From Pavona decussata (Eukaryota), in NCBI GenBank assembly GCA_977016875.1, contig CDRNST010000091.1, positions 1,984,001-2,048,000 on the forward strand: a stretch of 64,000 nt of DNA. Direction: 5' to 3'. Position 1 is the first letter of the stretch. Every line of letters begins with the position of its first letter. Shown one piece after another: positions 32,531 through 63,492 of the stretch. The notes under the pieces are model-generated. The model had not been told where the DNA came from, did not search any database, and saw nothing but the letters and a program-made list of their open reading frames with translations. The position numbers and the translations under genes are program-made.

Positions 32531-35500
32531 TTAATGTTTTCTCCTCAGAAAGTGACGTTTCATCTGTTTCAGACGAGCAATACCACCACGTCGAGAAGGT
32601 GGGTGTCCTAAAAAGACACAGGAAATGTCATACGACAATTAGTTTTAAGAAGTAAGGGAATGACTAGAATGCTGGAATGTTGTAGAGGTTGCATTGTAAG
32701 GTTCACGAAAACTTTCGCTTTGCATTTCAGTTCAGCTGAATACAATTATGTGAAAATAACAATAAAATCTGCACCATGTTCGGCTTTCAGATGATTTATT
32801 ATGATTATTAATGTTATTGGGGATTGCATCACAAATGACAGGACTAAAATGCTACCTATAACTTTGGCCTTTATCCGATAACGACTTACTTCCAGTTCAA
32901 CAGGAAAGCAATTTCCTATGAAAAAAACTGACCTTGAGAGAAACTATGAAATACCGTACCACTTTTAAAGCAAATAAACTAAAGTGACTCGGCGGCTTAC
33001 CAGGGAAATGAACAAAATTAGTCTATACAAATTGCAAAATTGTTTCCGCTTCACAACTCAGTAAATTGTTTCAACTAATGTGTTGTCAACTACAATTTTT
33101 TAGCTGTCTCCAGAGGTTGTGGTAAATGGTTTTCAGCCTATCGCAATGAGTGTATTATCTTGTTTATCTCACAAAAGCTCATGCCACAACTCAGCTATAC
33201 AATAACAGTGCATGTTCAGAACGAACATTCTTTTAAGATAGGATTAACAACCCACTTGTAAACTTGTACACCTCCATGCTCCAGGGACCCCCTCTTCCGT
33301 CTGGTTTGCACGCACCTGAGGACCCGTACATATTGTATACCTGCAGGATATCCTTTCCGCCCAAACACTGGCCACCGTTTTCCAAAGCAAAGGCCGGAAA
33401 TCCTTGAACTTTTGCTATCAGTGAGCATTTCTTTATTGCAAATTTGCGCGCCTTGTAGTCGTTTCCATCTAACATTGGAAATATTCCTTCCAAGCTGGAT
33501 AAGGCCCTTTCAGGCTGGTCTCTCCAGCAACCGATGCTAAAATAATCTGGGAAGGGAAAATCATCAAATGTGAAACGCTACTTGCTTAATTAAAGGCCTT
33601 AGTGGCATTTTTATGCAAGTAGGGAAGTTGCTTTTGCGCGTTTGTGGAGGAATGATGCCACAAAAACCTACGTAGAGTAAACAGGCCACTATCCAATGCT
33701 ACCGGAAAAAGCGACCGCCGCAGTCGTATTTCCTGAGGAAGATATTATAAGCCAAACAACCGAAAACTAGTTATATTTACGTCTACAGTTCGTCCGATCT
33801 CAAAATGTTGCCTACCGAGTTAATGATATCATCATGTATCATCAAGTCGGCTAGAAGGTCTAAGTGTTAATAACTGTTTAAAGGACATTACTCTCTTATA
33901 AGTATTGATGTCTGTGATAGCCTAGTTCAGTGAAGAGGTATTTGACATTTAATTAAACAAGTTGAAATCGAAAGGTCCAAGCTTCATAAAGACAATCTGG
34001 AAGTTTAGTGGATGCCTTTAACCAGCTAAAAATACATTTATTTAATCCATCTCTATTTTGAAATTTTGTCTTTGTTGTTGTTGTTGTTGTTGTTGTTTTT
34101 GATATTCTTATTTTTGTTACTTCTGCTGTTATTATTCCTAACAATTACATACTAAGCACTAACCTGGAGCATGCGCTCTTCTCATTGTTCCATCTAGATA
34201 AAAGAAAAAACTACTGTTGTCACGTTTAATAGTTACAGATGTACATACTTCAATACTTTCGTTAGTTCTCTAAACATTTCCACATTGAAAAACAATCTAT
34301 TCCACAACTGTTAAAGTGAGTACTACCTTTTCTGACGAAAACGATTAGAACCATACATCTACGTCTACCAGGAAAGTACAGGCCCTCTGTGTGAGGCCGT
34401 ATGCGCTCTCAGACCGTGCCTTCTTTATAATTTGTTAATTTTGTTAGTTCCATTCACCGAGCTACCCTTAAAAATATGTACATGTACCCATTATGTTATA
34501 TAATTATGTAGACATCGTTAATTATCTCGCAAAATTATCAAGTCTCTACTTGATAACATGTGGAAAAACATGATGATTCACAGTACGGAAAAAGATGGCT
34601 GCCCATTTACCACAATGCTTTGCGAACCTAACACAGCCAATAGGCACATAGAAAGCCACATTTTTTTGAAAAATTCGCCCCAATACTAACAACATTGTGT
34701 ATGCTAGTTTTGAAGTTCTTGGAATTTTTTTGTGCGTTTTTATGAGCGTTTTTAGGGTTTTCGTACGCTAAGAATTATGGGGAAATGCACCAGTCGCCAT
34801 CTTGTTCGGAACGGTGGATTATGAAGCCCGTTGGTTCGGCCAATAACAAAGCACTAAAATATGACCGTATAAAAGGAACAATCGGTATGAAGAGTTTCCT
34901 TTCATTGTTTCTGCTTTACACTTATCACTAAAGAGTCTTCTTACTTGTTGGTCTAGAAGCCTGGAATTTCCTCTCCCTTGTGTTATCCACCGGTTCTAAA
35001 AGATATTAAAAACACGTCGCAAATTGTTAAAAAGTATTACCTCAAAGTTTTTAGTTGCTATGACTTTTGCTATTTATCCCTTTTGGAAAAGGGGGTTAAT
35101 TACTAAAGAAACTATTGTGTTACGTCGGTGGGAAGACCGTGAAGCGCTCTGACGAAGAGCTAACGCTCGAAACGTCAGCACTTAAATTTCTTTACCGTGC
35201 AAAATTAACTTATCAACTCAGTGGATGTGATAAAACCTTTTAATCTCCGATAGAATTTGAATTAATATGATGTGACTCAATTTCTCAGTCTGCTGATGAG
35301 AATCTTCACCTCTAGAGTGTGACATTTCAAGACAGTTTCTGTTGCTGAGCAACAATTTCTAGTGGTTGGTGATCCGCGCTAAATCCATCGACACTTAAAT
35401 AAAAGTGATTTTGTTTTGGTTTTTTTGGTCACCTTTTTTTTTTTAATCTTCCCCCTCACTCCCTCCTCACTCCACTTCCTTTCTCTTCTAGCAAGGTGAT

Positions 35501-62900: not shown

Positions 62901-63492
62901 CTCAACCCAAATGGACGCCCAAACGTTTTCAAGGTATCAACTGACTTCTCCTTCCTCAGCCCTTAAAGAACATATTTTACCTACAAGCCAAGAACCTAGA
63001 CCCACTATAGATACACCCGAAGATACACACCTTAAAGTCTCCCAGATGAGCCAGGCGGAAGCCCAGTTTTTGGAAAATAAGGCAACCATGCAACCAATGT
63101 TTGCACCTCGTATTGCATCTAAAGACAAAATTCCTGGGAAAACTAAAAGACTTCGGTTTGGTCTGGGAAACGTGCTAATTCGTTTGAACGGAAGACCGTT
63201 GGAAGATTCCTCTCAACTGCGAAGTAAGATCATCAATGGTCAGATTATACAAGGAAAAGGAAAACTGGTCAAATCGAAAGGTCCAGTACGAGTGAAACTG
63301 TCACATACTAAGGACGCAAGGCATCTAAAGATAATTGACATAATAGCGCCAAAACAGTCTCATGTATACGATACTAAAAGTAAGATCAGAAAGCCTACAA
63401 ACGTTTCGAATGAAAGTAATAAAACAGATACAAAAATGGATTCATCGCCTGCCAGTAAAAGACTGCAAAAGGCACTTGATACTATCACATAA
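59995..63492 (+). CDS. Secreted disordered protein D (~831 aa) with Asp/Glu-rich and Gln/Pro-rich blocks and a basic C-terminus
   Basis: Exon 59995-60052 (MASTTTWTWILFVLFTALT, phase-1 donor) joins in frame to exon 61055-63492 (ATTLAKAAIG...). Furin-like RKR|Q site; acidic tracts DGDNDDDGDDDDE and ~62380-62785. Confidence 0.8.

Follow-up and report, generated by a model that had tools for sequence, protein, structure and literature searches.

A cluster of secreted-protein genes in the coral Pavona decussata, on balance an ancient cnidarian secretory gene block rather than a skeleton locus

We analysed a stretch of 64,000 nucleotides from Pavona decussata (assembly GCA_977016875.1, contig CDRNST010000091.1, positions 1,984,001 to 2,048,000 of the forward strand), hereafter the window, which carries four consecutive genes for secreted proteins, here called g1 to g4. 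A fifth gene, g5, follows beyond the window end. The window is AT-rich animal DNA, with a GC content of ~0.34-0.44, and its protein matches are those of a stony coral. The ATG codons were verified at 45919 (g1), 54586 (g2) and 59190 (g3) on the minus strand and at 59995 (g4) on the plus strand. The coding part of exon 1 measures 55 to 64 nt (Table 1) and encodes a hydrophobic, signal-peptide-like start. It ends in all four genes with a GT donor placed one base into a codon (phase 1), and exon 2 opens with an AG acceptor in the matching phase. This reading agrees with the initial annotation, which had proposed four genes starting at these ATG codons, each with a short signal-peptide exon closed by a phase-1 intron. 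The RefSeq N-termini of the g3 and g4 orthologs from Montipora, Acropora, Oculina and Stylophora show the same signal peptide and the same junction residues.

Contigs from four public RNA runs were placed on positions 52750-58749. Three of these runs, from three studies, carry a joint between 54532 and 53130 that skips 53131-54531, is bounded by GT..AG on the minus strand and corresponds to the predicted g2 intron. The same three runs cover g3 exon 2 (55713-57676); beyond it, their letters are those of the end of g3 exon 1 in reverse complement. Both joins, that across the g2 intron and that of g3 exon 1 to exon 2, are matched exactly, which bears out these junctions as first proposed from the sequence. 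No contig joining g3 to g2 was found among the runs placed on this interval, and the two are therefore separate genes. GenBank models from Stylophora (584 aa) and Oculina (600 aa) fuse g3 to the g2 exon. We rejected g2 as a 3' exon of g3 and regard these models as annotation errors, since in the RNA g2 has a separate 5' exon and g3 a separate 3' end, and RefSeq has g3 alone, with 506 aa. A Desmophyllum GenBank model in which the g4 C-terminus is fused to helical exons of g5 is likewise an annotation error. The four genes are real, spliced and transcribed, each with a signal-peptide-type start. Between g2 and g3, and outside both, the segment 54950-55349 resembles a short repeated or transposon-derived element; there the metatranscriptome run X9 stacks many short contigs to a depth of 165-262, and other RNA runs have loose ends at 55290/55329.

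A departure from the initial annotation concerns g1, which is not a short exon followed by one larger exon: it comprises at least 12 coding exons, one of them WSC-like and containing Cys, and its stop lies at 32531. Splice signals and conservation gave the later exons and the join of exon 2 to exon 3, in which the donor CT/GTAAGT in phase 1 meets a cag/ acceptor in the same phase. Exon 2 carries the polybasic site HKKRKKQ followed by FIVANWGG. In the alignment of homologs, K, Q, I, A and N residues around this site are invariant, and many Gly, Asn and Leu positions of the exon are also retained. Sequence searches were run exon by exon, full-length g1 orthologs (~979 aa in Stylophora) lying beyond the length-filtered search. 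A word-seeded search with exon 2 returned 27 homologs, all coral-type, and an ESM Atlas search with it gave no usable match; the exon is single-copy in its own genome (602 Mb). Exon 3 is composed of 33% Gly, 15% Met and 14% Asn and contains an (MGNG)n array with a 12-nt period and ~22 copies (43506-43770). The penultimate exon is 93% identical to its counterpart in a distant coral, whose other g1 exons are ~60% identical. It gives a sub-threshold match to the Pfam WSC profile (PF01822) at profile positions 2-69 of 82, with an E-value of 7.2e-5 and a score of 23.4 bits, below the gathering cut-off of 27.8. In this match, which extends over 69 of the 82 positions and takes in several Cys, g1 would resemble WSC proteins; the rest of g1 has no counterpart in known members.

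The segment of g2 that precedes the GGR varies among coral clades, and conservation lies in the helical acidic stretch that follows. In the RNA-supported 5' untranslated region (UTR) of g2 (54550-54624, minus strand), an upstream ATG at 54624 opens a 24-codon frame that overlaps the main ATG out of frame and is a possible translational control element. The fifth gene starts ~1.5 kb beyond the window end (L010:1478-1535, equal to G000:C91:2049478 onward) with a 58-nt signal-peptide exon and a phase-1 donor. It encodes a large helical-repeat and disordered protein, ~2,070 aa long in Stylophora, in which a Pfam scan found no family. Stylophora, Oculina and Nematostella share its signal-peptide exon, phase-1 donor and position after g4. 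In six species, particular g5 exons are similar to the conserved core of g2, which is helical and 45 aa long. We compared this core with 6,868 six-frame open reading frames (ORFs) from all the DNA analysed; after the six g2 orthologs, the twelve best matches were all g5 exons (best E 1e-4), which suggests that g2 arose as a partial copy of g5.

A word-seeded search with g3 returned 25 homologs, whose alignment shows a conserved N-terminal region of ~110 aa and several inner motifs. Its composition is only mildly biased, and its isoelectric point (pI) is 9.0. The g3 and g4 genes are arranged head-to-head around a divergent intergenic region of ~800 bp, which we aligned between the window, Stylophora and Oculina, covering the complex and robust coral clades. 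The element TGACGTCA at 59303-59310, ~115 bp upstream of the g3 ATG, is a perfect palindrome of the cyclic AMP response element (CRE) type and is invariant in the three species. So is GTCACGTGA at 59862-59870, a site with an E-box, TCACGTGA, ~130 bp upstream of the g4 ATG; palindrome and E-box alike are unchanged between complex-clade and robust-clade corals. The shared region with its invariant elements fits co-regulation of g3 and g4, which probably act together. The initial annotation had extended co-regulation to the whole cluster; the promoter evidence agrees with it for this pair, to which the claim is limited. A short invariant motif, [LI][KR][VI]..MSPA[EQ]..F, is common to g3 exon 2 (~57470-57500, minus strand) and g4 exon 2 (~63025-63060, plus strand), with an hhalign E-value of 0.07 across 33 columns; it may have a common role in docking or processing, or be a coincidence.

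The g4 product is rich in Ser, Asp, Gln and Pro, has a pI of 5.1 and contains Asp runs and a long acidic region. Across coral clades, residues within the Pro/Gln stretch and a W-DE..R-SEVL motif are invariant, and the C-terminal ~110 aa are nearly so. The C-terminal domain is single-copy in its own genome. A first structure model of the C-terminus was poor, with a predicted local distance difference test (pLDDT) score of 52; an AlphaFold model from a deeper, cnidarian-wide alignment of 26 rows had a mean pLDDT of 72.5 and seven predicted β-strands. Neither Foldseek (best E 0.24) nor VIA-wide (best Z 2.8) found a PDB structure that matches this model, and sequence-profile searches of the PDB returned non-significant matches only. 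Two of these matches, to HtrA PDZ domains (E 0.4-0.9), were discounted. The protein P0196 (2,269 aa) contains 11 stretches that match part of the g4 C-terminal domain (E 4e-6) and may be a repeat-expanded relative of it.

Table 1. Exons and other features of g1 to g5. Positions are those of the window, except where an L number, the handle of a locus used in the comparisons, precedes them.
Feature	Position	Strand	Description
g1 exon 1	45859..45919	-	ATG and signal peptide, 61 nt, phase-1 donor G/GTAACT; region conserved in coral loci L003-L005
g1 exon 2	44398..45450	-	Basic N-terminal region, polybasic site, then Gly/Thr/Leu/Asn-rich; donor CT/GTAAGT, phase 1
g1 exon 3	43362..43990	-	Gly/Asn/Met-rich; phase 1 in, phase 0 out; tblastn matches in L001, L003-L005
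g1 exon 4	42854..43075	-	74 codons, phase 0/0; tblastx identity 74-88% to L003-L005
g1 exon 5	41324..41510	-	Charged, coiled-coil-like; 62 codons + 1 base
g1 exon 6	39883..40197	-	104 codons, phase 1/1
g1 small conserved coding blocks	34937..39054: ~39054/39012-38968, 36688-36606, 35766-35663, 34995-34946	-	Conserved in tblastx against L004/L011; block limits approximate
g1 WSC-like exon (penultimate)	33256..33546	-	5 Cys, phase 1/1
g1 last exon	32531..32607	-	Basic tail; TAA stop 32533-32531
g2 exon 1	54532..54845	-	5' UTR to at least 54845, ATG 54586, 55-nt coding part, donor after 54532; RNA contigs cover 54532-54845
g2 exon 2	52826..53130	-	Begins Tyr/Pro-rich; GGR and helical acidic core conserved; acidic tail before the stop; RNA joint; orthologs in 5 coral loci
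g3 exon 1	59127..59190	-	Signal peptide, 64 nt, phase-1 donor; RNA contig loose ends at 57676 read into exon 1
g3 exon 2	55713..57675	-	Coding 57675-56288, 3' UTR to ~55713; RNA contigs span 55713-57676
Shared divergent g3/g4 intergenic region	59191..59994	.	~800 bp; alignment of window, Stylophora, Oculina (complex and robust coral clades)
g4 exon 1	59995..60052	+	Signal peptide, 58 nt, phase-1 donor; RefSeq N-termini match (Montipora, Acropora, Oculina, Stylophora)
g4 exon 2	61055..63492	+	Conserved RKR-Q site, Pro/Gln-rich and acidic stretches with invariant motifs, C-terminal ~75-aa β domain (~63170-63390)
g5 further exons	L010:3608-3880, 4192-4371, 5927-6568, 7498-7833		

The products had been described as Cys-poor and compositionally biased. 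The large exons indeed encode 0-2 Cys (none in g4 exon 2 and g1 exon 3, one in g1 exon 2), and several are biased, as in g1 exon 3 and g4; g3 is only mildly biased, and the WSC-like exon of g1 has 5 Cys. Plain low complexity does not describe them either, as g1, g3 and g4 contain motifs and domains that are strongly conserved across coral clades. The S-x-E motifs, which had been noted as the FAM20C kinase site, number 1, 1, 1, 6 and 6 in the five large exons and are no commoner than composition-preserving shuffles predict (p 0.13-0.70). Apart from the sub-threshold WSC match, Pfam scans of all large exons found no family. Profile-profile comparison detected no paralogy among g1, g3 and g4 (hhalign probability <1%), and by these comparisons the five genes appear unrelated in sequence save for the weak likeness between g2 and g5. 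A signal-peptide exon followed by a phase-1 intron is a generic layout of secreted-protein genes. The shared architecture noted initially is therefore present in all four genes as such a generic layout and is not a family trait, the genes not being detectable paralogs.

The order and orientation of g1-g2-g3-g4 are also found in Stylophora and Oculina, and the g1-g2(-g3) part in three further coral assemblies, so that the conserved linkage that had been anticipated is present in five other coral assemblies. Word-seeded searches with g4, g3 and g1 exon 2 gave coral-type matches only, and every named match is "uncharacterized". We then searched 1.84 billion representative proteins with a profile of the C-terminal 161 aa of g4. 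This search gave 29 matches, the named ones belonging to Nematostella vectensis (E 7e-36), the soft coral Xenia, the hydroid Hydractinia (LOC130641358) and the jellyfish Sanderia. The Nematostella ortholog (XP_032241474, 912 aa; E 1e-51 with a full-length profile by hmmsearch) agrees in layout over its whole length. Its signal peptide leads to a basic site and Q-Q-I-I, and then come a middle part rich in Pro and Gln, a W-VDE motif, an acidic region and the C-terminal domain. The g4 tree matches the cnidarian phylogeny; its 12 stony-coral rows form one clade (support 100), and the window species falls within the complex clade of Scleractinia. The g4 family thus appears to be spread across Cnidaria and confined to them.

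On the Nematostella chromosome, the opposite-strand gene upstream of g4 contains the g3 N-terminal domain (E 5.5e-34), and the gene downstream is g5-like. The head-to-head g3/g4 pair also occurs in two further hexacoral assemblies that fall outside Scleractinia in the g4 tree. In 10 kb around these three non-scleractinian loci, profiles of g1 exon 2 and g2 gave no match, and g1 and g2 were seen only in stony-coral-type assemblies. Since g3, g4 and g5 are adjacent in Nematostella too, gene order indicates that they were neighbours before stony corals and their skeleton existed, in a block that the ancestor shared by sea anemones and stony corals already had. The g1 and g2 genes may be later additions in the stony-coral lineage.

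We favour, on balance, an ancient cnidarian secretory gene block that serves a cnidarian-wide product and is not an aragonite skeleton locus. A g3-g5 block that predates stony corals and a g4 family found Cnidaria-wide point to such a product as the primary job of these genes. All products of g1 to g5 start with a signal peptide. Furin-type convertases would cut them at conserved basic sites, the candidates being RKR before Q in g4, KR in g3 and the polybasic run in g1. The products would act as largely disordered scaffolds, with short conserved motifs and small end domains that bind partners or glycans. Candidate end domains are the C-terminal ~75-aa β domain of g4, which is without a known fold, and the putative WSC-like lectin domain at the C-terminus of g1. 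The g3 and g4 genes, divergently transcribed from one promoter region, would supply products that probably act together, and g2 (probably a partial g5 copy) and g1 would have joined the block later, in the stony-coral lineage.

As to what the product is, we would guess at matrix material of a secretory organelle (the cnidocyst or a dense secretory granule) in preference to extracellular matrix. The initial annotation had named the cnidocyst and mucus or cuticle as alternatives to the skeleton, and these stay candidates. The resemblances behind our guess are a g4 family found across Cnidaria and only there, a start like a propeptide closed by a basic pair and, in g1, a stretch rich in Gly and Met. 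A propeptide ending at a basic pair has been reported for nematocyst proteins (PMC4321713). The Hydra nematocyst elastomer cnidoin contains 24% Gly and 17% Met, with a QMQGCGQQ repeat and flanking minicollagen Cys-rich domains (PMC4321713). The g1 product, with its signal peptide, putative propeptide ending at a basic pair and disordered repeat of similar Gly and Met content in exon 3, is like cnidoin in kind. It is unlike it in that exons 2 and 3 have a single Cys and no minicollagen domains and the repeat is MGNG. The terminal Cys-rich domains of minicollagen-type proteins were not found in g4 exon 2 or in g1 exons 2 and 3. A second comparison is with granins, which are acidic, Cys-poor secreted proteins rich in Gln, Pro, Asp and Glu, with basic cleavage sites and conserved termini. 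The g4 product shares this acidity and composition, has candidate basic cleavage sites and conserved termini, and its gene has a CRE-type element close to the promoter. The sequences are not similar, and the likeness is in kind only, in composition and promoter. The most specific version of the preferred reading is speculative and rather unlikely as a whole: g3-g5 would form a co-regulated block for the matrix of a cnidarian-specific organelle, most likely the cnidocyst, with a β domain of new fold in g4, and g1 (WSC-tailed and elastomer-like) and g2 (a partial g5 copy) would be stony-coral additions.

Several points weigh against an ancient secretory block as formulated here. The RNA evidence consists of bulk contigs, which show transcription and splicing and not co-regulation. 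The lineage of the two further hexacoral assemblies was assigned from the g4 tree alone, and the absence of g1 and g2 outside Scleractinia is that of a length-filtered, word-seeded search and of 10-kb flanks at three loci. Convertase cleavage is read from the conserved basic sites only, the WSC match lies under the Pfam gathering score, and the organelle or tissue is a guess. Finally, a prediction of a complex between the C-terminal domain of g4 and the N-terminal region of g3 scored 0.00, which speaks neither for nor against binding.

The five genes might instead be mere neighbours that share no function, their synteny being kept by interleaved regulatory DNA and their first exons having only the generic layout. 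The undetectable paralogy of g1, g3 and g4 would be expected of such neighbours, phase-1 introns after signal peptides are common, and the other half of the window holds unrelated receptor-like genes and transposon debris. Yet the head-to-head g3/g4 arrangement, with its ~800 bp spacing and invariant promoter elements, is common to anemone and corals, the products of all five consecutive genes are secreted, mostly disordered and without a Pfam family, and g2 resembles g5. We consider chance neighbourhood unlikely.

The initial annotation had proposed a matrix or biomineralization locus, in which co-regulated acidic, Pro/Gln-rich and Gly-rich proteins, phosphorylated at S-x-E sites, steer aragonite deposition in the manner of the vertebrate SCPP cluster. 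The proteins are acidic and Cys-poor with signal peptides, as this would require, the linkage is kept in every stony coral examined, and g1 and g2 were found in stony-coral-type assemblies only. In its (MGNG)n array and in having a basic and then a Gly-rich region, g1 also recalls mollusc framework proteins, a resemblance only. Against it stand the unenriched S-x-E motifs, the pan-cnidarian g4 and the linkage of g3, g4 and g5 in Nematostella, which has no skeleton. In calcifying lineages g3, g4 and g5 are neither confined nor expanded, as orthologs occur in Nematostella and other non-calcifiers.

Skeletal proteomes also failed to provide the expected entries. The 60-protein table of the Stylophora skeletal proteome includes SAARP1-like and SAARP2-like proteins (PMC7115838). 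The Stylophora orthologs of g3 (LOC111338397) and g4 (XP_022800609-12), together with LOC111338389 and nearby LOC numbers, are absent from it, and no XP_0228006xx or LOC1113383xx entry occurs in that table. No KAJ73537xx entry was found in the text of a Desmophyllum skeletal proteome preprint or in one supplement, and a literature search for 18 ortholog identifiers found no paper. The RefSeq orthologs from A. millepora, Stylophora and Montipora are labelled "uncharacterized" and bear no Swiss-Prot name of a skeletal matrix protein. With their Asp/Glu blocks, the acidic skeletal organic matrix proteins (SOMPs) such as CARP4/SAARP1 are secreted coral proteins that g4 resembles in its Asp runs and long acidic region. 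They differ in being defined by recovery from skeleton. The g3 and g4 orthologs are missing from the Stylophora list, SAARP and SOMP are not RefSeq names of these orthologs, and those of g4 extend to Nematostella, Xenia, Hydractinia and Sanderia.

The SCPP analogy does not hold up either. SCPP introns are in phase 0, and the S-x-E site is a hallmark of the family. Like the members of that cluster, the coral genes lie in tandem, carry the signal peptide on a short early exon and encode secreted, disordered proteins that are poor in Cys and either acidic or rich in Pro and Gln. They differ in their phase-1 introns after the signal peptide, in S-x-E motifs at chance level, in that SCPP genes are paralogs whereas g1, g3 and g4 are not, and in that the core of the coral block is present in animals without mineral. 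A skeletal matrix locus is improbable on this evidence, and the confinement of g1 and g2 to stony corals leaves a residual possibility of a link to calcification.

Prohormone or neuropeptide precursors cut at basic sites, for example an amidated Tyr/Pro-rich g2 peptide ending at GGR, would fit the conserved basic sites of g1, g3 and g4, the conserved GGR of g2 and the invariant CRE-type element of the g3/g4 promoter, but are very unlikely given that repeated peptide copies are absent, that the conserved part of g2 is the helical acidic stretch after GGR and not the variable segment before it, and that g3, g4 and g1 are proteins of 480-1000 aa conserved over long stretches and domains.

An ancient secretory block, if correct, removes a plausible-looking candidate from the coral calcification loci, and indicates that being acidic, Cys-poor, clustered and secreted is insufficient to infer a role in the skeleton. 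It also draws attention to unstudied secreted proteins that are conserved in cnidarians only: a pan-cnidarian family whose C-terminal domain is unmatched, and its head-to-head partner, which predates the anemone/coral split. Should the cell type be the cnidocyte or a neurosecretory cell, the block would give access to how a cnidarian-specific secretory organelle is composed and regulated.

Elsewhere in the window, four intronless ORFs of 305-317 aa (2474-3427 on the minus strand; 6353-7294, 23049-23966 and 26597-27514 on the plus strand) look by eye like rhodopsin-type G-protein-coupled receptors. These ORFs resemble one another and make up a tandem family of this region that has no relation to the secreted cluster. 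ORFs of 200-300 aa on the plus strand (16704-22571 and 19067-19885) belong to one multi-exon gene that is broken up by an ORF resembling a reverse transcriptase, apparently transposon debris.

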